DNA from: Caecitellus pseudoparvulus
Lineage: Eukaryota > Protista > Bigyra: Bicosoecida
Assembly (NCBI GenBank): GCA_965644315.1
Contig: CBFFRQ010000043.1
Span: forward strand, 1-64,000
Length of the DNA: 64,000 bases
Direction: 5' to 3'
A model generated the notes under the pieces. The model saw only the letters and a list, made by a program, of their open reading frames with translations, had not been told where the DNA came from and ran no database searches. Made by a program: the position numbers and the translations under genes. Below are positions 1,183-20,904 of the stretch, piece by piece; the stretch's first letter is position 1, and each line of letters opens with the position of its first letter.

Positions 1183-1409
1183 AAACTTTCCAAATGTCAA
1201 GCTAATCACAAGTTGTGAAGTGCTAACATTGCCTAATCCAGGCGCTCGTGCACCCAAGTGTGGTGTTGCACAGTGCTTGCTGGTTGGGTGGTGCGCACCG
1301 GGGCGGGGTAGTGCGAATTCCGCACACCATCGCACCGTGGCTCCCAGTTTGCGCCCTCGGTCGGGGCATGCACCTGGGATCGACATCAAAAGCATCATTG
1401 ACAAGCATC

Positions 1410-3494
1410 ATGAACGCCCAAGTGGATCAAGTCCTGGGGGTCCTCTTCGTGGAGGGGTGCCTGAAGCGCAAGCAAGTGCTCGGCCCCAGAACAGGTGTCT
1501 TCACTGACATGCCACGTCGGGGTGCCGCACGCACCTTCGAGCTTGGAGGACCCCTGCCCAAGACTGATCATGATAGTTCATCTTCGGCACGGGACATGTG
1601 GCTCGAGGTCTATGGGGAAGCCGCCGAACGGCTGATCCCAGGGCTGAGTGCGGAATTCGGCAACGCCAATGCGGCCCTGCGCCAGGGACCCACCGGATCG
1701 CCAACCATCCTCGTCACGCTCGGAAGTGAGGGTGATTCACCAACAGTGGCACGTCAACTTCGCATTCTTGCTGCTCAAGAGGACGACTTCGCCATTCGAG
1801 TCGGCCAAGGTGGGTTCGTCGCCGTGGCCTACACCAACACCAAGCAGTTCGCATCGGCGAAGGCGAAAGTGAAGGTGAAGGCCCACCCCACCGCCATCCA
1901 AGTGGCCCACCAAGTGACCAAGGAAGCAACCGAAATCGCCTGCCAGTCAGGTGATGTTGCCAAGGTCATGTGCCTCGTTAGGTCCCACTTCGACCATGGC
2001 CCCGTGCCAGCCCAAGCCGTCCGTCCCAGTGTCAGACAATCCGTCCCCTCCGAGGGTGATGCACCTGTCGACACCAAGACACCATCGACCTGGACTGACA
2101 CTCAGCTCGACAAGGCACCGAAGAAGAAGAAGACCCGTCGAGGCAAGCGAGGAAAGGGCAAGTCAGCCGGACGATCCCTCACCTTCGAGGACGTCTTCAT
2201 CAAGAACGTCCGGCCACCTGCACCTCGACCAACCTCACCACCTGCCACCCAAGGCTCACCCAAAGATACCGTCACCACCCCTGTGGTGCATGCCATGTTG
2301 CCTTCATCAAGGGTGCAGCGGGGCGTCGACCGCAAGTGGCCGTCCCCCACCCCGTCGGGCGAGGCAAGCCCCGAGGTGCACCGGTATCGGCCGTCTGCAG
2401 CAGCAGCATGGGAGGTGATCACAAGGGTGGTGCCTCTTCATGACAGTGTGCGGACACCCGAGCACCTGGCCGAGTACCCCATCAAGCCTGGCCCTCTGGC
2501 CGACCTGCTGTCATCGACCCACGTGTACTCTAACGTGGGGGGGCGGGCCTGTGTCCAGGCCTGTCTCGAGACGGCAGCAGGGGAGAGGGTCTTCGAGGCT
2601 GGGGACCTCCTCCTACTCCAGCATGCAGCCACCATCAACGCTGCCCAGCTTGCCTTCAAGCACATGGTCAGGCAGCTGGAGGGGGTGGTCAGTGACTCGT
2701 CCAGCTCGGACATCATGGACGTCGGCCAGAAGCCACCCTCCCCCTTCCGCTCAGACGGGCAACGGGTGGCCGTCTTCCGCAACATGCTGCACCAGCACTC
2801 GCCGGATGACACCTTCCTGGCCCCAGGTACACCACCAGTCCTGCTTCCCGGCCTGCACCTGCTCATCGACCGCATCAACCAAGGGTACCGTGCCCCAGCC
2901 GGGCATGATGACCTTGGCCAGGCCGGCGTCGACCCCAGCCAGGTTGATGAAGAGGGTGACCAAGAGGGGCACCTCGACGGAGTGCTGTATGCCTTCGCAC
3001 TTCGAGAGGTGTGGACCGACAACACGGCCCATCTGCAGCTCATCCTCGTCGACCATGATCGAGGCAAGCTGGTGCTGTGGAACCCCGACATCCCTGACCT
3101 CCATGACGAGCTGCCCCTGCACAAGTGCATGACCCGGCTGGCAGCCGAAGGCATCAACGTCTTGTACCGGATCTGGACCACACCCGAGGCGGGCAGTCCA
3201 GCACCCTTCCGGGACAGGCTTCGAGGGGCACTCCAGTCTCTCCGAGATGACTTCCCCCCCCTGCCTCACAAGGCCACCGACGGCACCGTGCACCCCCAGA
3301 CCCTCATCGCTGGCAAGGGCACAAGGGTGGCCATGCCTCATGGGCGGATGACCCGACAGCAGGCCGCCACCCTGGAGGCTGAGGTCAAGGACCCCCTCAA
3401 GCGGCTGGTGCCTGAAGACGGCGAGGGTCGCCTGCCCAAGGTCAAGGATGTGCCCCACATCTCGATCGGGCAGATGGGTGGACGCCTGATGTAA
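1410..3494 (+). CDS. Family A protein (~694 aa): unknown N-terminal region, basic patch, putative Josephin/papain-like cysteine protease domain; no EN or RT
   Basis: The track ORF 1248-3494 starts at GTG; in-frame ATGs are at 1368 and 1410 (MNAQVD preferred). It contains KAPKKKKTRRGKRGKGK and the motifs SNVGGRACVQACLE and AHLQLILVD...LVLWNPD, which are shared with the B ORF. Confidence 0.8.
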   Translation: MNAQVDQVLGVLFVEGCLKRKQVLGPRTGVFTDMPRRGAARTFELGGPLPKTDHDSSSSARDMWLEVYGEAAERLIPGLSAEFGNANAALRQGPTGSPTILVTLGSEGDSPTVARQLRILAAQEDDFAIRVGQGGFVAVAYTNTKQFASAKAKVKVKAHPTAIQVAHQVTKEATEIACQSGDVAKVMCLVRSHFDHGPVPAQAVRPSVRQSVPSEGDAPVDTKTPSTWTDTQLDKAPKKKKTRRGKRGKGKSAGRSLTFEDVFIKNVRPPAPRPTSPPATQGSPKDTVTTPVVHAMLPSSRVQRGVDRKWPSPTPSGEASPEVHRYRPSAAAAWEVITRVVPLHDSVRTPEHLAEYPIKPGPLADLLSSTHVYSNVGGRACVQACLETAAGERVFEAGDLLLLQHAATINAAQLAFKHMVRQLEGVVSDSSSSDIMDVGQKPPSPFRSDGQRVAVFRNMLHQHSPDDTFLAPGTPPVLLPGLHLLIDRINQGYRAPAGHDDLGQAGVDPSQVDEEGDQEGHLDGVLYAFALREVWTDNTAHLQLILVDHDRGKLVLWNPDIPDLHDELPLHKCMTRLAAEGINVLYRIWTTPEAGSPAPFRDRLRGALQSLRDDFPPLPHKATDGTVHPQTLIAGKGTRVAMPHGRMTRQQAATLEAEVKDPLKRLVPEDGEGRLPKVKDVPHISIGQMGGRLM

Positions 3495-3908
3495 GTCACC
3501 TGTGGGGGCATACTCCCTGTGCCACACATGACTGAAGCTTTGTGTCGCGACCGACGCACATAGCTGACATCGGACATTGGAAAGTCCAACCCAACCTCAC
3601 CATCACCAACCCAACATCGATACCAACACATCAGGACTCGGCTCAGTGGAAGGGGAAGGCACTTGCAGCAAGATCTGTGAGGCCGCCCCCAAACCTGAGC
3701 CGAAGGGACAGCCGGGCTGGGTCGTGTGCTTGCATCTCAGCAACACCCAGTCCGTGTCGAGTCCATATCCTCCAGCCCACACCGCCACCCAAGCCAAGCA
3801 AGTCGGGTCTCCACCCCTGGACATCGGACCGAGACGGACGAGACTGGACTGGACGGACAAGACAAGAGTGGACCGAGACCTGGACCTACACCTCAAGACC
3901 ATCCCACC

Positions 3909-4114
3909 GGGGCGGGCGCTGAAGCGCCAAGACAGACGGCGACTTATACAACGGACACGAGTCTGTGCTAGTCGCAAAGCCGTGCAAGCGGTGCCGTCGT
4001 GGTGTCTGTGTCACTGCATTCTGTTGTGGCGCAGGTGGCACCACATGTCCAAGCCCAAGCTGTACCATGATGTAGCCTGCATGGAGGCAATCTGCAATGC
4101 ATTGAGTAGCTAAC
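3909..4114 (+). other. Conserved structured 3'-terminal RNA element of family A (also in A2 and A3)
   Basis: Serial stem-loops that align with the B 3' end, with compensatory changes. Confidence 0.75.
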
Positions 4115-7042
4115 TTTCCAAATGTCAAGCTAATCACAAGTTGTGAAGTGCTAACATTGCCTAATCCAGGCGCTCGTGCACCCAAGTGTGGTGTTGCACA
4201 GTGCTTGCTGGTTGGGTGGTGCGCACCGGGGCGGGGTAGTGCGAATTCCGCACACCATCGCACCGTGGCTCCCAGTTTGCGCCCTCGGTCGGGGCATGCA
4301 CCTGGGATCGACATCAAAAGCATCATTGACAAGCATCATGAACGCCCAAGTGGATCAAGTCCTGGGGGTCCTCTTCGTGGAGGGGTGCCTGAAGCGCAAG
4401 CAAGTGCTCGGCCCCAGAACAGGTGTCTTCACTGACATGCCACGTCGGGGTGCCGCACGCACCTTCGAGCTTGGAGGACCCCTGCCCAAGACTGATCATG
4501 ATAGTTCATCTTCGGCACGGGACATGTGGCTCGAGGTCTATGGGGAAGCCGCCGAACGGCTGATCCCAGGGCTGAGTGCGGAATTCGGCAACGCCAATGC
4601 GGCCCTGCGCCAGGGACCCACCGGATCGCCAACCATCCTCGTCACGCTCGGAAGTGAGGGTGATTCACCAACAGTGGCACGTCAACTTCGCATTCTTGCT
4701 GCTCAAGAGGACGACTTCGCCATTCGAGTCGGCCAAGGTGGGTTCGTCGCCGTGGCCTACACCAACACCAAGCAGTTCGCATCGGCGAAGGCGAAAGTGA
4801 AGGTGAAGGCCCACCCCACCGCCATCCAAGTGGCCCACCAAGTGACCAAGGAAGCAACCGAAATCGCCTGCCAGTCAGGTGATGTTGCCAAGGTCATGTG
4901 CCTCGTTAGGTCCCACTTCGACCATGGCCCCGTGCCAGCCCAAGCCGTCCGTCCCAGTGTCAGACAATCCGTCCCCTCCGAGGGTGATGCACCTGTCGAC
5001 ACCAAGACACCATCGACCTGGACTGACACTCAGCTCGACAAGGCACCGAAGAAGAAGAAGACCCGTCGAGGCAAGCGAGGAAAGGGCAAGTCAGCCGGAC
5101 GATCCCTCACCTTCGAGGACGTCTTCATCAAGAACGTCCGGCCACCTGCACCTCGACCAACCTCACCACCTGCCACCCAAGGCTCACCCAAAGATACCGT
5201 CACCACCCCTGTGGTGCATGCCATGTTGCCTTCATCAAGGGTGCAGCGGGGCGTCGACCGCAAGTGGCCGTCCCCCACCCCGTCGGGCGAGGCAAGCCCC
5301 GAGGTGCACCGGTATCGGCCGTCTGCAGCAGCAGCATGGGAGGTGATCACAAGGGTGGTGCCTCTTCATGACAGTGTGCGGACACCCGAGCACCTGGCCG
5401 AGTACCCCATCAAGCCTGGCCCTCTGGCCGACCTGCTGTCATCGACCCACGTGTACTCTAACGTGGGGGGGCGGGCCTGTGTCCAGGCCTGTCTCGAGAC
5501 GGCAGCAGGGGAGAGGGTCTTCGAGGCTGGGGACCTCCTCCTACTCCAGCATGCAGCCACCATCAACGCTGCCCAGCTTGCCTTCAAGCACATGGTCAGG
5601 CAGCTGGAGGGGGTGGTCAGTGACTCGTCCAGCTCGGACATCATGGACGTCGGCCAGAAGCCACCCTCCCCCTTCCGCTCAGACGGGCAACGGGTGGCCG
5701 TCTTCCGCAACATGCTGCACCAGCACTCGCCGGATGACACCTTCCTGGCCCCAGGTACACCACCAGTCCTGCTTCCCGGCCTGCACCTGCTCATCGACCG
5801 CATCAACCAAGGGTACCGTGCCCCAGCCGGGCATGATGACCTTGGCCAGGCCGGCGTCGACCCCAGCCAGGTTGATGAAGAGGGTGACCAAGAGGGGCAC
5901 CTCGACGGAGTGCTGTATGCCTTCGCACTTCGAGAGGTGTGGACCGACAACACGGCCCATCTGCAGCTCATCCTCGTCGACCATGATCGAGGCAAGCTGG
6001 TGCTGTGGAACCCCGACATCCCTGACCTCCATGACGAGCTGCCCCTGCACAAGTGCATGACCCGGCTGGCAGCCGAAGGCATCAACGTCTTGTACCGGAT
6101 CTGGACCACACCCGAGGCGGGCAGTCCAGCACCCTTCCGGGACAGGCTTCGAGGGGCACTCCAGTCTCTCCGAGATGACTTCCCCCCCCTGCCTCACAAG
6201 GCCACCGACGGCACCGTGCACCCCCAGACCCTCATCGCTGGCAAGGGCACAAGGGTGGCCATGCCTCATGGGCGGATGACCCGACAGCAGGCCGCCACCC
6301 TGGAGGCTGAGGTCAAGGACCCCCTCAAGCGGCTGGTGCCTGAAGACGGCGAGGGTCGCCTGCCCAAGGTCAAGGATGTGCCCCACATCTCGATCGGGCA
6401 GATGGGTGGACGCCTGATGTAAGTCACCTGTGGGGGCATACTCCCTGTGCCACACATGACTGAAGCTTTGTGTCGCGACCGACGCACATAGCTGACATCG
6501 GACATTGGAAAGTCCAACCCAACCTCACCATCACCAACCCAACATCGATACCAACACATCAGGACTCGGCTCAGTGGAAGGGGAAGGCACTTGCAGCAAG
6601 ATCTGTGAGGCCGCCCCCAAACCTGAGCCGAAGGGACAGCCGGGCTGGGTCGTGTGCTTGCATCTCAGCAACACCCAGTCCGTGTCGAGTCCATATCCTC
6701 CAGCCCACACCGCCACCCAAGCCAAGCAAGTCGGGTCTCCACCCCTGGACATCGGACCGAGACGGACGAGACTGGACTGGACGGACAAGACAAGAGTGGA
6801 CCGAGACCTGGACCTACACCTCAAGACCATCCCACCGGGGCGGGCGCTGAAGCGCCAAGACAGACGGCGACTTATACAACGGACACGAGTCTGTGCTAGT
6901 CGCAAAGCCGTGCAAGCGGTGCTGTCGTGGTGTCTGTGTCACTGCATTCTGTTGTGGCGCAGGTGGCACCACATGTCCAAGCCCAAGCTGTACCATGATG
7001 TAGCCTGCATGGAGGCAATCTGCAATGCATTGAGTAGCTAAC
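4112..7042 (+). mobile_element. Family A copy A2 (full length)
   Basis: Same 5' start (aactttccaaatg) as A1. The only internal difference noticed is C3995 vs T6923. Ends in CTAAC. Confidence 0.9.
4338..6422 (+). CDS. Family A protein, copy 2
   Basis: Translation identical to the A1 ORF (track ORF 4176-6422). Confidence 0.8.
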   Translation: MNAQVDQVLGVLFVEGCLKRKQVLGPRTGVFTDMPRRGAARTFELGGPLPKTDHDSSSSARDMWLEVYGEAAERLIPGLSAEFGNANAALRQGPTGSPTILVTLGSEGDSPTVARQLRILAAQEDDFAIRVGQGGFVAVAYTNTKQFASAKAKVKVKAHPTAIQVAHQVTKEATEIACQSGDVAKVMCLVRSHFDHGPVPAQAVRPSVRQSVPSEGDAPVDTKTPSTWTDTQLDKAPKKKKTRRGKRGKGKSAGRSLTFEDVFIKNVRPPAPRPTSPPATQGSPKDTVTTPVVHAMLPSSRVQRGVDRKWPSPTPSGEASPEVHRYRPSAAAAWEVITRVVPLHDSVRTPEHLAEYPIKPGPLADLLSSTHVYSNVGGRACVQACLETAAGERVFEAGDLLLLQHAATINAAQLAFKHMVRQLEGVVSDSSSSDIMDVGQKPPSPFRSDGQRVAVFRNMLHQHSPDDTFLAPGTPPVLLPGLHLLIDRINQGYRAPAGHDDLGQAGVDPSQVDEEGDQEGHLDGVLYAFALREVWTDNTAHLQLILVDHDRGKLVLWNPDIPDLHDELPLHKCMTRLAAEGINVLYRIWTTPEAGSPAPFRDRLRGALQSLRDDFPPLPHKATDGTVHPQTLIAGKGTRVAMPHGRMTRQQAATLEAEVKDPLKRLVPEDGEGRLPKVKDVPHISIGQMGGRLM

Positions 7043-7064
7043 CCCTAACCCTAACCCTAACCCT
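7038..7064 (+). repeat. Interstitial telomeric repeats (~4 units) between A2 and A3
   Basis: ctaacccctaaccctaaccctaaccct; the first unit has 4 Cs. Confidence 0.95.
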
Positions 7065-8192
7065 AGCCCCGAGGTGCACCGGTATCGGCCGTCTGCAGCA
7101 GCAGCATGGGAGGTGATCACAAGGGTGGTGCCTCTTCATGACAGTGTGCGGACACCCGAGCACCTGGCCGAGTACCCCATCAAGCCTGGCCCTCTGGCCG
7201 ACCTGCTGTCATCGACCCACGTGTACTCTAACGTGGGGGGGCGGGCCTGTGTCCAGGCCTGTCTCGAGACGGCAGCAGGGGAGAGGGTCTTCGAGGCTGG
7301 GGACCTCCTCCTACTCCAGCATGCAGCCACCATCAACGCTGCCCAGCTTGCCTTCAAGCACATGGTCAGGCAGCTGGAGGGGGTGGTCAGTGACTCGTCC
7401 AGCTCGGACATCATGGACGTCGGCCAGAAGCCACCCTCCCCCTTCCGCTCAGACGGGCAACGGGTGGCCGTCTTCCGCAACATGCTGCACCAGCACTCGC
7501 CGGATGACACCTTCCTGGCCCCAGGTACACCACCAGTCCTGCTTCCCGGCCTGCACCTGCTCATCGACCGCATCAACCAAGGGTACCGTGCCCCAGCCGG
7601 GCATGATGACCTTGGCCAGGCCGGCGTCGACCCCAGCCAGGTTGATGAAGAGGGTGACCAAGAGGGGCACCTCGACGGAGTGCTGTATGCCTTCGCACTT
7701 CGAGAGGTGTGGACCGACAACACGGCCCATCTGCAGCTCATCCTCGTCGACCATGATCGAGGCAAGCTGGTGCTGTGGAACCCCGACATCCCTGACCTCC
7801 ATGACGAGCTGCCCCTGCACAAGTGCATGACCCGGCTGGCAGCCGAAGGCATCAACGTCTTGTACCGGATCTGGACCACACCCGAGGCGGGCAGTCCAGC
7901 ACCCTTCCGGGACAGGCTTCGAGGGGCACTCCAGTCTCTCCGAGATGACTTCCCCCCCCTGCCTCACAAGGCCACCGACGGCACCGTGCACCCCCAGACC
8001 CTCATCGCTGGCAAGGGCACAAGGGTGGCCATGCCTCATGGGCGGATGACCCGACAGCAGGCCGCCACCCTGGAGGCTGAGGTCAAGGACCCCCTCAAGC
8101 GGCTGGTGCCTGAAGACGGCGAGGGTCGCCTGCCCAAGGTCAAGGATGTGCCCCACATCTCGATCGGGCAGATGGGTGGACGCCTGATGTAA
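7065..8192 (+). pseudogene. 5'-truncated family A ORF (protease-like half retained, no native start)
   Basis: The track ORF 7074-8192 starts at an internal GTG and equals the C-terminal 372 aa of the A ORF. Confidence 0.75.
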
Positions 8193-8812
8193 GTCACCTG
8201 TGGGGGCATACTCCCTGTGCCACACATGACTGAAGCTTTGTGTCGCGACCGACGCACATAGCTGACATCGGACATTGGAAAGTCCAACCCAACCTCACCA
8301 TCACCAACCCAACATCGATACCAACACATCAGGACTCGGCTCAGTGGAAGGGGAAGGCACTTGCAGCAAGATCTGTGAGGCCGCCCCCAAACCTGAGCCG
8401 AAGGGACAGCCGGGCTGGGTCGTGTGCTTGCATCTCAGCAACACCCAGTCCGTGTCGAGTCCATATCCTCCAGCCCACACCGCCACCCAAGCCAAGCAAG
8501 TCGGGTCTCCACCCCTGGACATCGGACCGAGACGGACGAGACTGGACTGGACGGACAAGACAAGAGTGGACCGAGACCTGGACCTACACCTCAAGACCAT
8601 CCCACCGGGGCGGGCGCTGAAGCGCCAAGACAGACGGCGACTTATACAACGGACACGAGTCTGTGCTAGTCGCAAAGCCGTGCAAGCGGTGCCGTCGTGG
8701 TGTCTGTGTCACTGCATTCTGTTGTGGCGCAGGTGGCACCACATGTCCAAGCCCAAGCTGTACCATGATGTAGCCTGCATGGAGGCAATCTGCAATGCAT
8801 TGAGTAGCTAAC
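7065..8812 (+). mobile_element. Family A copy A3, 5'-truncated
   Basis: Matches A1 from position 2367 (agccccgaggtg) to the CTAAC end and is capped by telomeric repeats at the truncation. Confidence 0.92.
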
Positions 8813-8817
8813 CTCAT

Positions 8818-11800
8818 GTGACCCCTACCGAAGTGCTGACACTTGAGGGCTGCCCCAGGAAGCCAGGGGTCCTCCCAAGAATCCCTCTTGCCGATGACAG
8901 TGCCCTTGCCCCACTTCTGGCGGGGGACCATGTCTTCAGCAATGTGGATGGGCAACACTGTGTACAGGCATGTGTGGAAACAGCTATAGGGGAAAAGCTT
9001 CTTACAACCGAGGACCTTGTGCTGCTGCAGCATGCAGCTGCGATCCAAAGTGCACAGCGAGCGTACGCATCTCTGCGCAGCATGAAGCAGGTTGCGGCTG
9101 GAGACTCATCTGACTCTGATGTACAAGCTATTCCGATGGCTAACACGACTGCTGAAGAGTCTCCAGAAGATGATCTTGAACTTTTCACCCGCCTCCTTCG
9201 ACGGTTCTCCCCTCCCGATGCATCCATTCAGACTGCCATGCCCCCAGTCCTTCTTCCAGGGCTGCACACACTATTGGAAGAACTGAACTATGACTACGTG
9301 CAACTCAACGGAGGCGGTCCCCAGATCAGAGGAGAGGTCGGTGTTAGCTCTGCAAGGACGAAAGGCGACCATGCTGAGCTCTTTCAGAATGTGCACTTTG
9401 CGTTTGCGTTGTCGGCGCCAGATGGATCAGAGATGGCTCACCTCATGTTGATCTTGGTAGACCCACAGCGGAATGAGCTTGTGCTATGGAACCCAGACGA
9501 ACCAACACAAAGCACATCCATCCCAATGGTCAACTGTATGGACCATCTGCACTCCCAAGGGATCGACACTGTCTACAGAGTTTCAGCAAAGAAGCATACG
9601 GGAGCCCCCACTTCTCTCCGGGACCGAGTGAGAAGAGCCCTCCTGAAGCTCAAAGAGCGATACCCACCCTTTCCGTTCGTGGATGCGGAGGGGATGGTCC
9701 ACATGAAGACCTACATCGCAAGCCGATCTACACGGATCACCATGCCAACTGGTCGCCCAACCCGAAAGCAAGCCGCATCAGAACAATACGTCAGAGAGCA
9801 TGATCCACTCCTGCAACTCATACCCAGTCCGTCTCCACCACTCAAGACAGACTGGACGCAGAGTCCACATACCCCAATCGGCCGTGCAGCCACGACCCAA
9901 GTCGCTCTTGTCTCATGGAACGTCGCTGGGGCAGGGGGGCAACACCTACATGAGCTGATCCTGTGCACAAAGTCAGTTATCAAGCGGTCAGCACGCCTGG
10001 TTATGTGTCTCACTGAGCCAGGTGGACGTGGAGTCCTGGACACTGAGGTGATGGGGCTTCAGTGTTTTCGTCCCAGCCCACCCGAACGACCTCCAGGCAG
10101 AAGCGAGGTAGCTATGCTTGTCGATAGCCGGCTGAATGCCTCCCTTCTCCCAGGACTAGGGCTTGATGGCCGCTGTTTGGTAGCCTGCTCCATCCCCTGC
10201 AAGCCCTTGCCTCTTGCTGTGATCGGAGCGTATGTCCCGAATTGGCATACAGCCCAAAGGAAGAAGGCGCTTGCAGACCCCGACACCAAACTCCCACACC
10301 GGCAGGAGATGTGGGAGCAGCTTACCCATGCTGTTCAATCACTACGCCACACCCACATGATAGCGCTCATGGGAGACTTGAACTGTCACCCTGGCGACTC
10401 TGGCATGAAGTGCTGGGACACAGAGGCGTGGGAAAACAGGACAGGAGTTCCCGATCCTACAGATGATGTTGGAGTACTCGATGCACTTTGCAGAGAAGGG
10501 GGGCTCCAGCCAGCGGGGAAGAGTGGGGACTCAACACAGGCGACGTTCAAGCGTGCCCTTGATCATGTACTCATCTGTCCAAGGCTGATGCACCACCTAA
10601 GACAGCCGTTAAAAGTGACAACCACATTCTCTCGCTCAGGCAAACGAAACCCAGCCAAGATGGAGCTGAGCGACCATCACCTTCTGTCAGTCATAGTTGC
10701 TGTCAAGCTGAAGGGGCAAGCAAGGAAACTTCGCTCAACCCATCGCCAAGCCACTGCCCCTCCTTGGTGGCCGTCTGCAACGCCAGAAGGATCAAACGCC
10801 CAACTCCACTTCAGAACTGCGGTCAAGCAGTCACTGGAGACTGCCCTGGCAGCGCCACTTGCAGACTCGTCGAAGCAGCTTACAGAGCTGGATGACATCA
10901 TTGGCCTTGCAGCTCGCGACACCCACTCGCACTGCAAGGTGTTGAGCACAGAACATCTCCAAGTACTCACGCATGTGCGATCACTCAGCTCACAAAAGAA
11001 GAAGCTGACCGCGAAGGTGTCCCGCCTCCGAAAGAAGCTCGATCGTACCCGGCGACATCACGCACTTCTGCGAGGCGCAACGGATGAGGTCCGGAAGAGG
11101 AAAGCACGCTCCTTGTGGGAACAGCAGCAGATGCTGAACGAAGACATTGACGCCACGCAGCGTCTGCGAAAACAAGCAATGAGAAAATGCTCGAGACTCG
11201 CAGCCAAGAAGCACCGATCTGCACTCCGCCAAGTGAAGCAAAGGCTCCGTGAGCTGATTCATGTTGATCCCTTTGCGGCGCATACACACATACGCCGTCT
11301 GTCTGGGCGGGGTCGGCGCACCTCCTCAACTCCACTGCAAGCGGTGTACAACACGGAAGGGTTCCTCGTTACGAGCCCCGACGAGGTCAAGGCCACCGTT
11401 CGTGAACAGATGGCCGACATCATTGGACCCAGACAGCAGCAGGTGATTCCCCTCGAGTTCGGACTATCCAGGTTCCTACCAACAAACTGCGCACACTTCG
11501 TGCCACCAGAAACGTGGCTTCCAGTGACAGACGTGGCTGTCTCTCATATCGACAAGCTAAGCCTTCATCGAAGTCCCGGACCAGGACATTACCAAGCCGA
11601 GCACCTGAAGTACTCACCGCTACCCGTGAAGCGAAAGTACGCGAGGGTTCTACTAGATGCCTTGCAGCAAGGCCAGCCACCAGCTACCTACCACAGTGGG
11701 GTTGGCACACTTCTCCCAAAGAAGACCAGCAAGCCAGGCCGAGTCTGCACGTATAGACTCATAGTGTGCCGTCCTCCGCAGGCGAAGCTTTTCTTCTCCC

Positions 11801-14340
11801 TGGTTGCGACCTGTGTCGAAAGCTGGATGAAGACTTGGATATCCAAAGAGCAGGCAGGCTTTACACGTACTCGAAACACCCATGAGCAAATCCTTGCACT
11901 GCAGGAGGCTGCGAATGAGTACGTAAGGGTCTCTGCTGGGCGGTCTGTTCTGATCCTGTTTGTCGATTTCAAGGGAGCATTTGACACAGTCAGTCACTCG
12001 GCCATCCTTGAGATCCTCACGGCTGCTCATCTTCCCCAACCCCTACTGGCCTGTGTCAAAGACTACATGACGCGAGCAAGCGTCGCCATACACACTGCAC
12101 ATGGTCTTTGCGATCCGATACCGGTCACGAACGGTGTTCCCCAGGGCGGCGCACTCTCTCCTCTCCTGTTCAAGATCGCTATTGACATTCTGTCTCAGCG
12201 GCTTCATGAGCTTCCCTACCAAGGCATTGTTGGAGCAGGAATCAGAACTCCCCATGGCCACATCACGCATACACTGTATGCTGATGACCTTGCATGTGTG
12301 GCCACTTCCCCTGCCGCGCTGCTCCGAATGTTCCAGGAAGTGAAAGCTCTTGGCGAGCGTGTGGGGCTTGCCATCAACCCAGGGAAATCAGGAGTCATGA
12401 TCGTCACAAGTGCCTCAGCCAGCCGTGGGGTTTCTGCAACAGAGCGGCGTAAGGGCCTGTGGAGATCAAAGTGGCTCAAGTCAGGCTCCATGTTGAAGGT
12501 GAAAGGCGTCCCTATCCAGCGGACAAGCACCTATACCTACCTTGGGGCACCACTGTCAGACAACACCAACCGCACCAGACTCCTTGCGATCAGACAGGCC
12601 AGCATCTCATGCTGTCAAGCGGGCTTCTCCTGTGGAGCCCTGCTGAGTAGTAGGTGGCTGGACGTCAACCTGAAGCACCGAATGAGCGCGGCCTCCATCA
12701 CAAGCGCAGCAGACTATATCCTTGCGACCCAAGTTCGGAACTCAGTCCTCCCCCTCCGAGATGTTGACCGGGGACTTGCCAAAGCACTAAGCAAATCCCA
12801 CCTTGGCATGCAGAGCTCGCTCATGCGCATGCACAATTTCTCCAAGCTGGCTGTCTGTGGGATTCTACCTGCACACATCCGAGCTACCAAGCACAGGGTC
12901 AACATCTTCAGGAGACTACTGAAAGGGATCAATCAAAGCACCCCAGCAGCAATCGCTCTCAAGTACACCCTCCCCGATGCCATCGAACGCCTGCCAACCG
13001 ATGTGGACATGCAGCTCGTCTTGAGGACCAATATTAGCCTGGACAAGCCTGCTCCAAATGGTGTGCCAGACTCTTGGGCTCTGCACGGCTTGCTCGACTT
13101 GTGGCTCTACGGAGCACTCCCAGACAGAGCGGATGTACTGTGTTACTGCACCCCAGCTGATGAAGAAGAAGTGAGCTTGGACTGTGGTCTCGATGTCTGC
13201 CGAGGCATGGATGCACTTCCGTTGAAGGTGGAGCTTCTTGGTCTTGCAGCCGCAGAGTCCAGCTCGTTCCTTTGTGCACCGGTCTTCGCAGCGTCCACAC
13301 CTTGGGCAACACGTCAGCGCATCATTGAGTCGTATCAGCACATCGCACCAACAGTGACCTGTCCAGAAGTTCAGTACTCTACCACAAGCGAGATTCCGCG
13401 AGCACGACGTCCAAAGCCCTACCACGTTGGACCTGGCGCACGGCTCTTCGTTTGGCTCCATCCCATCCCCTCGGCTGCGAGCCCACTCCTCTGGGCCTGC
13501 GAAGAAGAGCAGGAAAAGCGAGTAAAGGTTCACCTGTGGCAGACTTTGCAGGTGCTACACGGCGACGACTTCCCAACCTGCTTCAGAGAGTGCCCTCTCT
13601 GCCAGAGCCGCATGTGGCCTAGCCTTCACGAGCACATCTTGCTTTCCTGCACACACCCTCCACTGGCTGAGTCTAGAACAGCAGCTCTCAAAAGCACCCT
13701 TCAACTCGCACTTCAATCTGCGGAAGAAGCTTCACGCAAGCCCCGACCTTGTCGCGTTGCTGTCCCTCAACTTCTGGTTGCAGCTCTGCATCGCTGGGAA
13801 GCGGGCCTCTATCTCCGCACCCCGGAGCGGAAGGTCATGCTCCGCTTCCTTCTCTGTGGTCAATGGCCCTTCCGTTGGGGCACGGCGGCTGACCTGCAAC
13901 TTGTGTCGAAGGAGGAGGCATCCGTGCTCTCGAACCCACACCTGACCTTCCGCAACTCTGCCGGGCCACTCCTCCCTCCTTCCTGCTGGAAACAAATGGT
14001 GGCGAAGGCGGCCGACTTCTCATCAACTGCGTGGGACGAATGTGTGAAGCGTATGCTCAAACTCACCTCTCAAGAGTTTCTACCTGTGCAAAAGCATGCA
14101 CGGTATCTGTGGTGGGCGGCGCATGGGCGGGGAAGTACACTACCTGGGTCGTCAAGACCTCTCCCAAGTGCGGTAAGCAAACACACCGCCAGGGTCCGGG
14201 CGAGGCGGTTTGAGCGTACATACTTCCCCGTGCGCACGGAGCGGCGCGCTCCGCGCTCCTTCAGTGCGCAGTCCACGCTGTTTGATGTTGGTGTTTCCAG
14301 GCCCGACATACCATCCAGTCCGGGTTCTGACTTGGAGTAG
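8818..14340 (+). CDS. Non-LTR retrotransposon polyprotein: putative Cys protease (~8930-9890), APE endonuclease (~9900-10710), reverse transcriptase (~11560-12560), CCHC knuckle (~13590-13650)
   Basis: APE motifs SWNVAG, LTE, AYVP, GDLN, LDHV, SDH. RT motifs SPGP, YRLI, QAGF, DFKGAFD, GVPQGGALSPLLF, YADD (12277), GLAINPGKS, YLG. Knuckle CPLC...H...C. No stops or frameshifts; no ATG before the protease Cys. Confidence 0.96.
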   Translation: MTPTEVLTLEGCPRKPGVLPRIPLADDSALAPLLAGDHVFSNVDGQHCVQACVETAIGEKLLTTEDLVLLQHAAAIQSAQRAYASLRSMKQVAAGDSSDSDVQAIPMANTTAEESPEDDLELFTRLLRRFSPPDASIQTAMPPVLLPGLHTLLEELNYDYVQLNGGGPQIRGEVGVSSARTKGDHAELFQNVHFAFALSAPDGSEMAHLMLILVDPQRNELVLWNPDEPTQSTSIPMVNCMDHLHSQGIDTVYRVSAKKHTGAPTSLRDRVRRALLKLKERYPPFPFVDAEGMVHMKTYIASRSTRITMPTGRPTRKQAASEQYVREHDPLLQLIPSPSPPLKTDWTQSPHTPIGRAATTQVALVSWNVAGAGGQHLHELILCTKSVIKRSARLVMCLTEPGGRGVLDTEVMGLQCFRPSPPERPPGRSEVAMLVDSRLNASLLPGLGLDGRCLVACSIPCKPLPLAVIGAYVPNWHTAQRKKALADPDTKLPHRQEMWEQLTHAVQSLRHTHMIALMGDLNCHPGDSGMKCWDTEAWENRTGVPDPTDDVGVLDALCREGGLQPAGKSGDSTQATFKRALDHVLICPRLMHHLRQPLKVTTTFSRSGKRNPAKMELSDHHLLSVIVAVKLKGQARKLRSTHRQATAPPWWPSATPEGSNAQLHFRTAVKQSLETALAAPLADSSKQLTELDDIIGLAARDTHSHCKVLSTEHLQVLTHVRSLSSQKKKLTAKVSRLRKKLDRTRRHHALLRGATDEVRKRKARSLWEQQQMLNEDIDATQRLRKQAMRKCSRLAAKKHRSALRQVKQRLRELIHVDPFAAHTHIRRLSGRGRRTSSTPLQAVYNTEGFLVTSPDEVKATVREQMADIIGPRQQQVIPLEFGLSRFLPTNCAHFVPPETWLPVTDVAVSHIDKLSLHRSPGPGHYQAEHLKYSPLPVKRKYARVLLDALQQGQPPATYHSGVGTLLPKKTSKPGRVCTYRLIVCRPPQAKLFFSLVATCVESWMKTWISKEQAGFTRTRNTHEQILALQEAANEYVRVSAGRSVLILFVDFKGAFDTVSHSAILEILTAAHLPQPLLACVKDYMTRASVAIHTAHGLCDPIPVTNGVPQGGALSPLLFKIAIDILSQRLHELPYQGIVGAGIRTPHGHITHTLYADDLACVATSPAALLRMFQEVKALGERVGLAINPGKSGVMIVTSASASRGVSATERRKGLWRSKWLKSGSMLKVKGVPIQRTSTYTYLGAPLSDNTNRTRLLAIRQASISCCQAGFSCGALLSSRWLDVNLKHRMSAASITSAADYILATQVRNSVLPLRDVDRGLAKALSKSHLGMQSSLMRMHNFSKLAVCGILPAHIRATKHRVNIFRRLLKGINQSTPAAIALKYTLPDAIERLPTDVDMQLVLRTNISLDKPAPNGVPDSWALHGLLDLWLYGALPDRADVLCYCTPADEEEVSLDCGLDVCRGMDALPLKVELLGLAAAESSSFLCAPVFAASTPWATRQRIIESYQHIAPTVTCPEVQYSTTSEIPRARRPKPYHVGPGARLFVWLHPIPSAASPLLWACEEEQEKRVKVHLWQTLQVLHGDDFPTCFRECPLCQSRMWPSLHEHILLSCTHPPLAESRTAALKSTLQLALQSAEEASRKPRPCRVAVPQLLVAALHRWEAGLYLRTPERKVMLRFLLCGQWPFRWGTAADLQLVSKEEASVLSNPHLTFRNSAGPLLPPSCWKQMVAKAADFSSTAWDECVKRMLKLTSQEFLPVQKHARYLWWAAHGRGSTLPGSSRPLPSAVSKHTARVRARRFERTYFPVRTERRAPRSFSAQSTLFDVGVSRPDIPSSPGSDLE

Positions 14341-14998
14341 TCCGTGAGAATCCCCTGGTAAACGCTGGCGGATCTGTGGAAACAAGATGGAAAGGCGTGG
14401 TGAGAACCACGATGGAAACTGTGGGCTTGGAAATCTTGGCAACGCTGGCCAGGTGGCCGGCCTTCATCTTGGCTTCTTTCTGCGAAGAAGAGAGAAATAA
14501 GTCCAAGATTGACGCATGAGTACTTAGATGGAGGCCTTGGATCCATGAGAAGCCCTTTGTATCCTCCTGTGGCGGCGCGTGCGGAAGTAGCCGTGCCCCA
14601 CGCACGGGCGCAAGGCACGCCGCCACCTGGAAGAGGACTCACCAGGATCCAGCCCGTCCACAAGTACTTCATCGACCTACATGCGCAGAAAGGAGCGGAA
14701 AGAGTGTGGAACATGTCAGGAACAAGGTGTTCTTCAAGCGTTCGGCGGGGCAGGCAGCGCGTGGTGCTGCCAAGTGCACTGCCCCACCGTGAAACGCCCC
14801 CACCTGTCCCGGGCACTGAGGCCCATGTAGGGCCCACAGTGGGACGAAGTCCCGGGCCCGAGTCGGAAACCGGCCCGGGATAATGGGGGAAGTTGAATTG
14901 TGAACTGATGGAATGTCTGAGTGGGTTGCGCTGGCTGCGCACCCCCCCCACGAGACCGAGCTCTGGCCCCCTCGCGGGCATGTGGACCTTTCTACCAA

Positions 14999-15210
14999 GG
15001 GGCGGGCGTTGAAACGCCCTAGCGAAGCGGCGGCTTATACAACGGACTCACGTCTGTGCTGGCTGCAGATCCATTAACATGGTAGCCGCTGTGGTGTACA
15101 TCGTGGCGCATTCGTGCGCGACGGTGAGCAGGACACCACGTGTGATGCCCCAGCTGCACCGCGCCTGTGGCAAGCGTGGAAGCGAATTGCAATGCATTGA
15201 ACTGTCTAAC
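14999..15210 (+). other. Conserved structured 3'-terminal RNA element of family B (also in B2 and B3)
   Basis: ggggcgggcgttgaaacgccc, cttatacaacggac..gtctgtgct, gtggtgt..acaccac and tgcaatgcattga are shared with A. Confidence 0.75.
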
Positions 15211-15216
15211 CCTAAC
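15206..15216 (+). repeat. Interstitial telomeric remnant CTAACCCTAAC at the B1/B2 junction
   Basis: Directly seen between the B1 3' end and the truncated B2 start. Confidence 0.85.
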
Positions 15217-15693
15217 CTTCAAGTGTTCGGCGGGGCAGGCAGTGCGTGATGCTGCCAGGTGCACTGCCCCACTGCGAAACGCCCCCACTTGTCCCGGGCA
15301 CTGAGGCCCATGTAGGGCCCACAGTGGGACGAAGTCCCGGGCCCGAGTCGGAAACCGGCCCGGGATAATGGGGGAAGTTGAATTGTAAGCTGATGGAATG
15401 TCTGAGTGGGTGGCGCTGGCTGCGCACCCCCCCAAGAGACCGAGCTCTGGCCCCCTCGCGGGCATGTGGACCTTCTTTCGAAGGGGCGGGCGTTGAAACG
15501 CCCTAGCGAAGCGGCGGCTTATACAACGGACTCACGTCTGTGCTGGCTGCAGATCCATTAACATGGTAGCCGCTGTGGTGTACACCGGAGCGCACTCGTG
15601 TGCGACGGTGAGCAGGACACCACGTGTGATGCCCCAGCTGCACCGCGCCTGTGGCAAGCGTGGAAGCGAATTGCAATGCATTGACTGTCTAAC
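15217..15693 (+). mobile_element. Family B copy B2, 3' UTR-only fragment, slightly diverged variant
   Basis: Aligns to B1 14732-15210 with scattered substitutions and small indels; ends in CTAAC. Confidence 0.92.
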
Positions 15694-15695
15694 CG

Positions 15696-16951
15696 GCAAC
15701 TCTGCCGGGCCACTCCTCCCTCCTTCCTGCTGGAAACAAATGGTGGCGAAGGCGGCCGACTTCTCATCAACTGCGTGGGACGAATGTGTGAAGCGTATGC
15801 TCAAACTCACCTCTCAAGAGTTTCTACCTGTGCAAAAGCATGCACGGTATCTGTGGTGGGCGGCGCATGGGCGGGGAAGTACACTACCTGGGTCGTCAAG
15901 ACCTCTCCCAAGTGCGGTAAGCAAACACACCGCCAGGGTCCGGGCGAGGCGGTTTGAGCGTACATACTTCCCCGTGCGCACGGAGCGGCGCGCTCCGCGC
16001 TCCTTCAGTGCGCAGTCCACGCTGTTTGATGTTGGTGTTTCCAGGCCCGACATACCATCCAGTCCGGGTTCTGACTTGCAATAGTCCGTGAGAATCCCCT
16101 GGTAAACGCTGGCGGATCTGTGGAAACAAGATGGAAAGGCGTGGTGAGAACCACGATGGAAACTGTGGGCTTGGAAATCTTGGCAACGCTGGCCAGGTGG
16201 CCGGCCTTCATCTTGGCTTCTTTCTGCGAAGAAGAGAGAAATAAGTCCAAGATTGACGCATGAGTACTTAGATGGAGGCCTTGGATCCATGAGAAGCCCT
16301 TTGTATCCTCCTGTGGCGGCGCGTGCGGAAGTAGCCGTGCCCCACGCACGGGCGCAAGGCACGCCGCCACCTGGAAGAGGACTCACCAGGATCCAGCCCG
16401 TCCACAAGTACTTCATCGACCTACATGCGCAGAAAGGAGCGGAAAGAGTGTGGAACATGTCAGGAACAAGGTGTTCTTCAAGCGTTCGGCGGGGCAGGCA
16501 GCGCGTGGTGCTGCCAAGTGCACTGCCCCACCGTGAAACGCCCCCACCTGTCCCGGGCACTGAGGCCCATGTAGGGCCCACAGTGGGACGAAGTCCCGGG
16601 CCCGAGTCGGAAACCGGCCCGGGATAATGGGGGAAGTTGAATTGTGAACTGATGGAATGTCTGAGTGGGTTGCGCTGGCTGCGCACCCCCCCCACGAGAC
16701 CGAGCTCTGGCCCCCTCGCGGGCATGTGGACCTTTCTACCAAGGGGCGGGCGTTGAAACGCCCTAGCGAAGCGGCGGCTTATACAACGGACTCACGTCTG
16801 TGCTGGCTGCAGATCCATTAACATGGTAGCCGCTGTGGTGTACATCGTGGCGCATTCGTGCGCGACGGTGAGCAGGACACCACGTGTGATGCCCCAGCTG
16901 CACCGCGCCTGTGGCAAGCGTGGAAGCGAATTGCAATGCATTGAACTGTCT
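15696..16951 (+). mobile_element. Family B copy B3, 5'-truncated (ORF C-terminus plus 3' UTR), innermost element
   Basis: Near-identical to B1 13952-15207 (offset 1744). Ends at ...gaactgtct, fused directly to host coding sequence. Confidence 0.93.
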
Positions 16952-17925
16952 CCGCTCGTGAGAAGCACGCACGTGTGGCTCTGTCCTGCAGCAACTCGTG
17001 CTGCCGCGCGTCCCCCGCCCAAATTAACTTGACCTGCAGCAGCAGGGTGCTCGTTGTCACCAATGTGGTTGAAGTTGCTGTATCCGAGCCTGCCAGAGAA
17101 TGCTGTCCCCCAGCACATGACCCCACCGTTCGTTAACACAGCACACGTGTGGCTGTCTCCAGCGGAAACCTGTGCTGCAGCAAGACCTGCACCCAGGTTG
17201 ACAGCACCTGCAGCAGATGGGTGCTCATTGTCACCAATGTTGTTGGTGTTACCATACCCAAGCCGGCCGTTTGATCCAAACCCCCAGCACATAAGCAGCC
17301 CAGTTGTCAACACTGCGCACGTGTGGCTCTTGCCTGCAGACACTTGGGCAGCGGCTGCACCAGAGCCCAAATCAACGGTTCCCGCCGCAGCTGGATCCTC
17401 AGAGGCGCCAACGTTCTCCTTATTGCCGTACCCCAGCTGGCCGGCGATGGATGAGCCCCAGCACATGACACCTCCGTCATCCAGCACAGCACAAGTGTGG
17501 CTGCCTCCTGCCGAAACTTGGGCCACGACAACACCAGCCCCAAGGTTCACATTGCCTGCAGTTTCTGGTAGCTCGTTGTCTCCGATGGGGTTCAAGTTTC
17601 CGTATCCGAGCTGCCCGCTGTAGCCTCCGCCCCAGCATCGCACCTTGCCGTCCGTCACGGCGCAGGTATGCAAGCCGCCGGAAGATAGCTGAGTGTCTTC
17701 AACAGACGTGCTCGCCAAGCGGCGATGAAGGTTGACATCATTCAGCATCAAACTGAGTCCACGAAGTGCAACGTGAGCTTCGGCGCAGCCCAACGTTGCC
17801 AGGAAGGCAGCGGAGAGCACTGCGAAACGCCACCGGCACGCTGCGCCGGCTCCTGCCCGCTTTTGCAAGTGCGCAGCGCAAGACAGACAGGCGCTAGCGC
17901 ATTGGTTCGTAGCATGGGGACCCAT
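16952..17925 (-). pseudogene. Secreted RCC1/BLIP-II repeat protein, 3'-truncated by retroelement B3 (frame reads on to a stop at 16792)
   Basis: 58-aa repeats of the form VSAGxSHTCAVLxxGxVMCWG...GxLGYGN: four complete plus the start of a fifth. Hydrophobic leader FAVLSAAFLATLGCAEA. Start uncertain (17925 or 18051). Confidence 0.8.
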
Positions 17926-20394: not shown

Positions 20395-20904
20395 GGCGTT
20401 GCGGCGCAGATTCCGCACATGTGGCCTCGATGCACCTCCGCGCTGTGGAAGGAACAAGGCTCCAGCAGGCCGACCAGGGTCAAATTCTAAGTTTCACTTT
20501 CACATTCCAGTTTTGAACATGAACGGCACCTGGGCTTCCGCGTTTTCCTCACGCAGCGTACCTGCTCCAAGTGTCAGCCGAGGCAGTGGCGTCTGCTGCC
20601 CCTCGTGCCTTTCGCCTCGTGCTGCCTCCACAGCTTCTTCGAGCTGGACTGCTCACTCTCTTTTCAACCCAAACACCTTCATGGTCCTCTAGAGATCGCT
20701 CCACTTCCTAGCCTTCGCCGAGATCAGTTGCACGTCGCAAGACCATCAATGCAAGTTTCCGTTCGGCACCGGCGATGCTCCAAGGAGCCAGGAGAAGTTT
20801 GCAGCTAGTCGACTTATCGTGCACTACAATGTGCCTGCCACCAAGCCAGGCAAACTAGTGTGTGCATTTTGCAGCCCATGTCACCCCCTCTTTCCTTTCC
20901 TTTA

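Follow-up and report, generated by a model that had tools for sequence, protein, structure and literature searches.

The end of a chromosome of the GC-rich marine protist Caecitellus pseudoparvulus (the window: 64,000 nucleotides of contig CBFFRQ010000043.1, positions 1 to 64,000) carries an array of telomere-specific retrotransposons of two families, A and B. The array probably arose through the activity of several related, telomere-specific LINEs whose endonuclease and reverse transcriptase (RT) are borrowed by the very abundant, RT-less A elements, with telomerase acting in alternation. As part of the same explanation, A would be a long-lived non-autonomous member of this set, which has retained the 5' leader, the front third of the ORF and a shared 3' module.

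Organization and genomic setting of the terminal array

The components of the array were delimited with TRF, self-BLAST and reading of the junctions, and the adjoining gene by comparison with five paralogous subtelomeres:

1–1182, no strand: terminal telomere tract (TAACCC)197 (TRF: 197.7 copies of TAACCC, 1–1186)
1183–4114, + strand: A1, RT-less, full length, 2.93 kb
4112–7043, + strand: A2, full length, 100% identical to A1
7044–7065, no strand: ~3.5 telomere repeats (22 bp) between A2 and A3, the first with four Cs
7066–8813, + strand: A3, 5'-truncated A, last 1748 bp
8814–15211, + strand: B1, family B, 5'-truncated
15212–15217, no strand: single CTAACC repeat between B1 and B2
15218–15695, + strand: B2, terminal 478-bp piece of a variant of B (95% identity)
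15696–16951, + strand: B3, terminal 1256 bp of B
16952–18051, - strand: RCC1-repeat gene, 3' part missing

The + strand is the C-rich strand at this chromosome end, and all six elements lie on it with their 5' ends toward the tip. A1 and A2, the only full-length elements in the window, are joined directly via a shared AAC (unit of 2928 bp); no intact autonomous copy is present in the window. The 484-bp "tandem repeat" called by TRF corresponds to the B1 tail plus B2. The 3' ends are intact in all six elements, and A-runs were found at none, either in the window or at the sampled ends. These termini consist of CAATGCATTGA followed by 4–6 nt and CTAAC(C), with the exception of B3, which ends in ...CTGTCT. 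Beyond B3 lies subtelomeric DNA without elements. An earlier note on this DNA had described six head-to-tail elements with intact 3' ends and no poly(A), capped by 197 TAACCC repeats, and this description proved accurate; the 0–4 repeats that it placed at the junctions are indeed few or none, the measured range being 0 to 3.5.

The signature of the 3' end occurs 128 times in the genome, versus 0 occurrences for the reversed control. For 98 of the 100 listed signatures, a contig end is no more than 30 kb away and the 5' end points outward; both exceptions are internal copies of G, the most divergent family. Every A or B match that was scored is terminal, and the contig starts that were examined consist of TAACCC repeats. 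Mapping thus confirmed the earlier suggestion of end restriction and constant orientation: the A and B elements are telomere-specific retrotransposons. At all of the 33 sampled 3' junctions, the element's end, CTAAC(C)(CT), begins the telomere register, and between 0 and many repeats follow it in phase. Most internal repeat tracts are shorter than 60 bp, versus ~1–2 kb for terminal tracts, and the telomerase-made cap distal to the arrays measures 0.8–2.2 kb. A TERT gene, whose presence the earlier note had raised as a question, was identified as a TERT-like 1389-aa open frame (Telomerase_RBD, 79 bits).

Autonomous families and their RT-less partner

The genome contains at least six related autonomous families (B, C, D, E, F and G) in addition to A. 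A full-length autonomous element measures 7.6–7.8 kb and has one ORF of ~2200 aa, and at least 12 autonomous copies retain open frames of more than 2000 aa. Compared with a copy on contig C153, which is ~1.2 kb longer at its 5' end, B1 lacks the first ~1.2 kb, comprising the 5' UTR, the start codon and the N region. The C153 copy encodes one 2204-aa protein with, in order, the N region, a papain-like peptidase fold (X domain), an AP endonuclease, an RT and a CCHC knuckle. The following parts are present in B1:

8818–14340, + strand: 1840-aa frame, open from the edge of the truncation onward
8827–9882, + strand: X domain
9910–10686, + strand: AP endonuclease (WNV, LTEPGG, AYVP, GDLN, LDH, SDH)
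11725–12546, + strand: RT (YADD at 12277–12288)
13579–13650, + strand: CCHC knuckle

The endonuclease is recognized by Pfam Exo_endo_phos with 25 bits in B1 (cut-off 24.5) and 33 bits in P0001, a long ORF, and four families share its N, E, Y, D-N, D-H and S-D-H motifs without any change. It is the best conserved domain (64–78% identity between families versus 38–46% for the N-terminal parts). The RT matches RVT_1 (E 2e-30) and, in the PDB, R2Bm (9e-18) and human L1 ORF2p (9e-15). With all catalytic motifs of both enzymes present, 3' ends constant, 5' truncation variable and LTRs absent, the elements are assigned to the APE-type non-LTR (LINE) retrotransposons, as the earlier note had proposed for the EN-RT element. 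The best outside matches of the RT are 24–28% identical and unnamed, and the nearest outside RTs (24–27% identity) are those of marine LINEs ending in (TC)n; no described relative of these elements was found in papers or protein databases, in line with the statement of the note that it recognized no such pair. Two points call for correction: B1 is not a full-length element, and, as a 5'-truncated copy, it is an unlikely source of the RT that the note has mobilise both families; at least six families are candidates for the RT that moves A.

Element A shows the following organization, given here for A1:

1183–1409, + strand: 5' UTR
1410–3494, + strand: ORF, 694 aa plus stop (N region, aa 1–336; X domain, aa 337–688)
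2418–3473, + strand: X domain, predicted papain-like cysteine-peptidase fold
2550–2552, + strand: invariant Cys381, at a helix start
3030–3032, + strand: invariant His541, in a strand
3078–3089, + strand: WNPD
3892–4114, + strand: shared structured 3' module (palindrome CAATGCATTG at 4095–4104, then AGTAGCTAAC)

The A protein contains neither endonuclease nor RT, and ends where the endonuclease begins in the long ORF. It also aligns with P0001 (42% identity over aa 34–690), and its identity to the genome's autonomous families is 38–48% in every case. By this homology, it is the first third of the autonomous single-ORF architecture, and its interpretation as a separate gag was rejected. Its N region has a basic stretch (KKKKTRRGKRGKGK, at 2121–2162) and a fold that was not recognized. 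Among 116 genomic matches of the A X domain, none of the autonomous copies, F family included, exceeds 48% identity. At least 47 full-length A copies are present, none of them farther than ~15 kb from a contig end; they are mutually ~100% identical and form exact A-A tandems with 2928-bp spacing at several ends. The G7 run of A1 at 2537–2543 is G6 in ~40% of the genomic A copies, which places a frameshift ahead of the candidate catalytic Cys; such copies may be genuinely inactive, or the difference may stem from homopolymer errors.

The X domain has no Pfam match. Its model (pTM 0.75) is predicted to be closest to papain-like peptidases of the Josephin/UfSP/C39 type: the top Foldseek match is Josephin (E 0.0096), the top rows of VIA-align are nearly all clan-CA peptidases, although with Z values of at most 7.5 (grey zone), and ESM features point to C58/YopQ/C39 at 0.84, which we take as a lead only. 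In the numbering of the domain, Cys45 (helix 45–54), His205 (strand 203–212) and D212, N222 and D224, invariant in five families with 38–46% identity, provide candidate catalytic residues in the order Cys...His...Asp/Asn of the predicted fold.

The proteins are maintained by selection. Between A and a 97% identical metagenome copy, 40 changes are synonymous and 20 non-synonymous (dN/dS 0.165, p 3e-11), with a dN/dS of 0.08 for the X domain alone, while D and its own 97% copy gave 0.128 overall and 0.05 for both APE and RT. These ratios show purifying selection on all domains, the ORF of A included.

A is linked to the autonomous families by its termini. The first ~100 nt of A1, a common 5' leader, are more than 90% identical to families C and D. 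The 3' module of ~220 nt, with its invariant CAATGCATTG palindrome and CTAACC end in the telomere register, is common to at least six families. It folds into 58 pairs, with 88% of cells paired versus 30–44% when the partners are slid; compensatory changes occur in 24 pairs versus 5–9 in the slid controls, and 0 of 500 shuffles match the observed value. The earlier view of an RT-less, protein-coding partner is upheld, and this partner shares cis-acting termini with the RT-bearing families, but the system comprises at least six related families plus A rather than one pair.

Comparison with known telomeric retroelements

Several features recall HeT-A/TART/TAHRE of Drosophila (Jockey clade): head-to-tail arrays at chromosome ends with 3' ends centromere-ward and variable 5' truncation, an abundant RT-less coding element leaning on RT-bearing relatives (HeT-A/TART), attachment to broken non-telomeric ends, and regulatory or recognition sequences shared in untranslated regions. 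In contrast to HeT-A/TART, the host is a protist with a TERT gene and 1–2 kb TTAGGG caps; the elements have no poly(A), a 3' end in the telomere register, a single ORF, no gag and a strongly conserved endonuclease; and the partner consists of the N-terminal region and the peptidase-like domain. A telomere of this type, maintained without telomerase, is ruled out by the TERT-like gene and the 1.18 kb of TAACCC.

TRAS1 and SART1 of Bombyx (R1 clade) are likewise APE LINEs with a fixed orientation that occupy the telomere repeats of a host possessing telomerase, and, as in TRAS, the sense strand is the C-strand. They have two ORFs and poly(A), and lie within long tracts, whereas here there is a single ORF and many junctions lack repeats; an RT-less coding partner has not been described for TRAS/SART. 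Membership of this class, defined by a gag-like ORF1 and poly(A), is contradicted by the single 2204-aa ORF and the lack of 3' A-runs. For SART1, pairing of the RNA 3' end with telomeric repeats is presented as probably important (PMC7265360).

It is known that the MoTeRs are CRE-like elements with a restriction-like endonuclease, and that the MoTeR2 protein is unrelated. MoTeR1/MoTeR2 of Magnaporthe and the FoTeRs of Fusarium combine an RT element with a shorter RT-less one with shared termini, head-to-tail in the TTAGGG telomeres of a telomerase-positive microbe (PMC7367193, PMC12857005). Here, unlike in MoTeR, the partner protein corresponds by homology to the first third of the long ORF, and the CRE-like class is ruled out by an endonuclease that is N-terminal and APE-type, with only a CCHC knuckle at the C-terminus. 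Giardia GilM/GilT, Chlorella Zepp and anole Tx1-1_ACar are LINEs located in or targeted to telomeric regions beside telomerase repeats (PMC10088271). No sequence relationship with them was detected, and neither a peptidase-like domain at the N-terminus nor an RT-less coding partner under selection is reported for any of them.

Other non-LTR polyproteins also start with a cysteine peptidase domain, but these have a restriction-like endonuclease and a Ulp1-type peptidase (His-Asp-Cys), in contrast to the Cys...His...Asp/Asn order and APE backbone found here. In stringent LINE/SINE pairs, e.g. eel UnaL2/UnaSINE1, a shared structured 3' tail is recognized by the RT. Here, the partner is protein-coding and under selection, and the 3' module occurs in at least six LINE families.

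Proposed growth of the chromosome end

We propose that A takes its endonuclease and RT from the autonomous families by trans-mobilisation. Transcripts without poly(A) would end in CUAAC(C)(CU), in the register of the telomeric C-strand; this terminus would pair with the 3' end of the G-strand, and the RT would copy the RNA, lengthening the G-strand, so that newer copies would come to lie distal to older ones with their 5' ends outward. The orientation of the elements is consistent with the extension of the G-strand by first-strand cDNA envisaged in the earlier note. Truncation at the 5' end might result from incomplete copying or later end erosion, and telomerase would add TTAGGG before, between and after element additions. 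The usual primer could be a nick made within the repeats by the endonuclease, for which the very strong conservation of that domain speaks, or a natural eroded end, which at least the B3/gene and A3/B1 junctions would require. With the endonuclease the most conserved domain (dN/dS 0.05), a TRAS/SART-like route through nicks in the repeats is no less probable than end priming in the manner of HeT-A. Since the element's own end is telomere-like, the register of the junctions is uninformative about the cut site.

At the junction of B3 with the RCC1-repeat gene, five paralogous subtelomeres, 96–98% identical, run distally past the break; they read "...GACCTCT|CCGCTCG", in place of which the window shows "...AACTGTCT|CCGCTCG", with the sequence of B. 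The joint is direct, with a 3-nt TCT microhomology; the B3 end, ...GAACTGTCT, lacks AACC, and the distal part of the chromosome is absent. As B3 abuts a broken gene that is continuous in the paralogues, the comparison shows one clear case, in this window, of addition onto a broken non-telomeric end.

A different reading is that the elements behave purely as TRAS/SART do, nicking the TTAGGG strand within the tract as parasites without any role in end repair, the repeat-less junctions reflecting later repeat loss. This reading is favoured by the AP endonuclease, the most conserved domain, with invariant catalytic residues and a dN/dS of 0.05, as well as by telomere repeats on both sides of many copies, the distal telomerase-made cap and the (TC)n-ending relatives, which follow the style of repeat-targeting LINEs. 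We nevertheless consider it unlikely as the sole mode: B3 sits on a broken gene without repeat or AACC, with the distal chromosome gone; apart from the CTAACC(CT) that belongs to the element, no repeat is present at the A3/B1 joint (a 4-nt AACC microhomology), at the B2/B3 joint or at many joints elsewhere in the genome's ends; and random nicks in the tract would not be expected to leave internal tracts so much shorter than the terminal ones.

It is very unlikely that the arrays are relics in which retrotransposition has ceased and whose identical copies reached many ends through break-induced replication, unequal exchange or gene conversion between subtelomeres. Subtelomeres have clearly been exchanged between ends, as indicated by flanking non-element DNA 96–98% identical at six ends, and, given the near-identity of the A copies and their tandems, recombination between ends and retrotransposition look alike within the genome. 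The truncation points and junction sequences nevertheless differ from end to end, the long frames of the autonomous copies are open, purifying selection acts on all domains between 3%-diverged copies, and constant 3' with variable 5' ends are what target-primed reverse transcription predicts. Long-read misjoining of repeats is extremely improbable: none of the listed short contigs bridges the array repeats or the B3/gene junction (those reaching the latter from the right carry paralogue-type sequence), so that the element order is that of the assembly, and homopolymers differing by 1 nt from copy to copy hint at a degree of consensus error, but the same grammar, with specific, interpretable junctions, recurs at dozens of contig ends and in two independently assembled metagenome scaffolds (D with CCCTAA repeats on both sides; A preceded by them).

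Beyond the proposed alternation of LINE and telomerase additions, we tentatively raise the possibility, doubtful at present, that the elements form a second system of end maintenance or healing beside telomerase, in which CUAACC, in the manner of a telomerase template, aligns on a short or broken G-strand end, the RT adds kilobases, telomerase re-caps the end and the peptidase-bearing protein of A brings the particles to chromosome ends. If this were true, the organism would exemplify an extant intermediate stage linking telomerase telomeres to those of the Drosophila type.

The stack of elements and its chromosome end

The window starts with TAACCC repeats (x197.7), followed by three copies of the RT-less, protein-coding element A (A1-A3) and three of the RT-bearing family B (B1-B3). 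Self-BLAST and the reading of junctions bore out the head-to-tail stack of six elements described in the earlier note, except for the extent of B1.

Elements and joints in the window
1183-4114, + (C-rich strand): A1
4112-7043, +: A2
between A2 and A3: telomere repeat, 22 bp
7066-8813, +: A3, 1748 bp from the 3' end of A
8814-15211, +: B1
between B1 and B2: single CTAACC repeat
15218-15695, +: B2, 478 bp from the 3' end of a 95% variant of B
15696-16951, +: B3, 1256 bp from the 3' end of B

A1 and A2 represent an identical 2928-bp unit, with AAC common to both at their joint. Since all six elements lie on the C-rich strand, their 5' ends point toward the tip. None of the six carries a poly(A) tail, and the DNA beyond B3 is non-element. 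A 484-bp "tandem repeat" at 14732-15694, considered as a satellite, was rejected, as it consists of the tail of B1 followed by B2. The B copy on contig C153 of the same genome extends approximately 1.2 kb further 5' and contains an ATG-initiated ORF of 2204 aa (L002:411-7025); B1 is therefore 5'-truncated, and lacks the leader, the start codon and about 365 codons.

Both the order of the elements at the window end and the junction of B3 with the adjacent gene rest on the genome assembly, and they are supported by the same grammar at dozens of ends and on two independent metagenome scaffolds. The short, assembled Logan contigs of public runs, from several marine samples, contain B together with its flank in three DNA studies and also in one metatranscriptome that could include DNA; these contigs stop at repeats, and at 16949 they show paralogue-type sequence. 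One metatranscriptome contig (run X15) links position 14376, in B, with 16386 through 35 letters of other sequence; this is probably the variant B tail of another strain, and gives no evidence of splicing.

The first non-element DNA (16952-20457) carries an RCC1-repeat gene and then an ankyrin-repeat gene. It contains internal repeats of about 330 bp that are found at many other places. Six chromosome ends (the window and contigs C114, C28, C107, C163 and C187) carry this DNA with 96-98% identity, which indicates that subtelomeres have been exchanged between ends. At 20905-44979 (- strand), 4 kb from the array, a single ORF runs for 8024 aa without interruption. It encodes RCC1-like propellers, FG-GAP repeats and several C-type lectin domains, and looks like the gene of a giant secreted or surface protein; a short tandem repeat within it (26215-26417) has a 30-bp offset and 86-88% identity.

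Survey of the genome (30.6 Mb, 215 contigs) revealed at least 47 full-length copies of A with ~100% identity, three copies of B together with relatives that are 75-80% identical, nine or more copies of family C (7.76 kb) and the further families D (that of protein P0001), E, F and G. In at least 12 copies the frame stays open for over 2000 aa. The elements form a system of several families and not the single pair of the earlier note. Copies of family C are 99.9% identical (L045 = G000:C135:3500-13499; L015-L023); in several of them 1-nt indels split the ORF, and those on contigs C34, C99 and C105 are open.

All scored matches of A and B were located close to the extremities of contigs, with those at the start on the + strand and those at the end on the - strand, i.e. 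the genome-wide mapping suggested in the earlier note placed them terminally and in constant orientation; the contig starts checked consist of TAACCC repeats. The signature CAATGCATTGA-N3-8-CTAAC, which does not depend on the family, occurs 128 times (vs 0 for the reversed control); 98 of the 100 listed places are no more than 30 kb away from a contig end and have their 5' end outward. Family G, the most divergent one, accounts for both internal signatures (G000:C18:155164 and G000:C30:253725; L059, L060). One of these remnants has ~620 nt at 88% identity and no telomere repeats; in the other, CTAACCCTAA comes after a tail of 60 nt. Both could stem from old insertions or mark places where chromosomes formerly ended. 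The most distal element is A at no fewer than 17 ends, where it lies directly beneath 0.8-2.2 kb of telomere repeat. A TERT-like gene, which the earlier note had also proposed to seek, is present in the genome.

Very short A tails (26-27 nt) occur within telomere repeats at C187:2785-2811, C190:3105-3131 and C140:2154-2179, on the distal side of full-length A copies, and a tail of 9 nt was found on a metagenome contig (L064:14-24); these look like aborted copying or template jumps. The 5' side of a 346-bp B tail (L011 = G000:C198:19208-22553) is interrupted by AT-rich DNA (GC 0.20-0.29 vs 0.6-0.7 for the genome) that extends for at least 20 kb, possibly a large mobile or viral insert within the telomeric element; contig C194 starts with a related terminal sequence (L046).

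Coding capacity, selection and shared termini

The full-length long ORF comprises an N region (~340 aa), a conserved domain X (~350 aa), an AP endonuclease with its full set of catalytic motifs, an RT with the motif YADD, and a CCHC knuckle. The APE domain alone gave no meaningful match among PDB sequences, and the RT scored about equally against R2Bm and L1 ORF2p, which points to no one clade. The 694-aa A protein aligns from end to end with residues 1-665 of the long ORF (42% identity to P0001; the five-family alignment agrees on the correspondence). A therefore represents the N-terminal third of the long-ORF architecture, and not a gag-type partner. Its protein ends exactly at the start of the endonuclease, and a 3' UTR of 620 nt follows. 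Recent derivation of A by deletion from B, C, D or F was rejected, with only 38-48% identity to every family; as no autonomous copy in the genome exceeds 48% identity to the X domain of A, this element is an old, separate lineage. The N region of A (aa 1-336) has no match in Pfam and no usable one in the ESM Atlas features search, and its AlphaFold model has a mean pLDDT of 41.

X likewise has no Pfam match, and its profile found a single 48-aa fragment among 1.84 billion representative proteins. With an AlphaFold model based on five family sequences (pTM 0.75), Foldseek returned Josephin deubiquitinases as best hits (E 0.0096) besides other papain-like enzymes; an independent all-against-all structure alignment returned almost only clan-CA peptidases (Josephin with Z 7.5, staphopain, C39, UfSP, calpain), and protein-language-model features C58, YopQ and C39 peptidases at 0.84. 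Each of these scores is weak on its own. X also has an invariant Cys at a helix start, an invariant His in a strand and then invariant Asp/Asn residues, i.e. the papain arrangement. X is predicted to be, probably, a cysteine peptidase or deubiquitinase. Shortly before the codon of the putative catalytic Cys, the G run at 2537-2543 is G6 instead of G7 in ~40% of genomic A copies (~21 of ~55), and the resulting frameshift splits the ORF; this may be a real slippage polymorphism (dead copies) or an error of the consensus within a homopolymer.

On one metagenome contig, an A copy stands after telomere repeats and before a C-like element; it is 97.0% identical to A of the window and has the same 694-codon ORF. 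The two differ by 40 synonymous and 20 non-synonymous changes (dN/dS 0.165, p 3e-11), with values of 0.08 for X and 0.30 for the N region. For family D, comparison with a 97% identical copy from a different metagenome scaffold gave 0.128 overall (endonuclease 0.05, RT 0.05, X 0.13, N region 0.14). The A protein, and likewise the endonuclease, are therefore kept by selection.

The last ~220 nt are common to all families, though their proteins differ by more than half. In the structure of 58 pairs predicted for this 3' module, which was derived from the same six sequences used to test it, 88% of cells are paired (30-44% with partners slid) and 24 pairs show compensatory changes (5-9 in slid controls), values reached in none of 500 shuffles. 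The module is followed by an invariant 10-nt palindrome (CAATGCATTG), a spacer of 4-9 nt and CTAACC. At the other end, A, C and D are over 90% identical across the initial ~100 nt of their 5' leaders. From such conserved termini around diverged coding sequence we infer that A is mobilised in trans; the termini would be the expected product of RNA recognition by a shared RT and of a shared promoter. The predicted element RNA would be non-polyadenylated, starting at AACUUUCC and ending with CUAACC(CU).

Junctions and route of addition

In a survey of ~60 smaller loci, all 33 sampled 3' junctions end with CTAAC(C)(CT) in telomere register, followed by 0 to 643 bp of repeats (mostly less than 60 bp). 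B3 ends with ...AACTGTCT and abuts ...CCGCTCG inside the RCC1-repeat gene, which lies on the opposite strand. Five paralogous subtelomeres (96-98% identical) continue distally at this point (...GACCTCT|CCGCTCG), which places the chromosome break inside the gene; B was then attached there via a 3-nt TCT overlap, without a telomere repeat. A 4-nt overlap (AACC) is found at the joint of A3 with truncated B1, and the overlap at the remaining junctions is 0-1 nt.

The endonuclease is the most constrained domain, and the closest RTs from outside this system (24-27% identity) are those of marine LINEs ending in (TC)n, which is the style of repeat-targeting LINEs. For these reasons, nick-primed insertion into telomere repeats is probably the routine pathway. 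The B3/gene and A3/B1 junctions require priming from non-telomeric 3' ends, and priming on short or broken ends is concluded to occur as well.

Comparison with known telomeric retroelements

A 2023 overview (PMC10088271) and the report on FoTeRs (PMC12857005) record telomere-specific retrotransposons in insects, Giardia, Chlorella, a lizard, rotifers and two fungi, and the overview contains no telomeric LINE from stramenopiles or related marine flagellates. Our literature search, directed at stramenopiles, Cafeteria and other protists, found none in stramenopiles or in marine flagellates related to them, and among 5.8 billion proteins no homologue of more than 28% identity was found beyond two metagenome proteins. 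For the family, which the earlier note had not recognised, the papers and protein databases searched gave no described relative.

Array polarity, the RT-less coding partner, shared untranslated modules and the healing of a broken end resemble HeT-A/TART; however, telomerase, whose absence defines that system, is present here. Coexistence with telomerase and an APE are shared with TRAS/SART, which differ in having two ORFs and poly(A). As in MoTeR1/2, a long and a short element are paired and have termini in common, but the endonuclease type differs and the partner protein is homologous to the long ORF. NeSL and Utopia elements also have cysteine-protease N-termini, of Ulp1 type and on a different backbone (PMC4640811), whereas X is not Ulp1-type and the element backbone is another.

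These elements therefore unite features otherwise found separately: an abundant RT-less coding partner that relies, as HeT-A does, on relatives with an RT, coexistence with telomerase as in TRAS, a 3' end in telomere register instead of poly(A), and a predicted N-terminal papain-like domain. Since nearly all chromosome ends of this small genome carry intact copies, a long-standing question becomes directly testable: in what way retroelements and telomerase share chromosome ends or compete for them, and by what path a Drosophila-type telomere could evolve.
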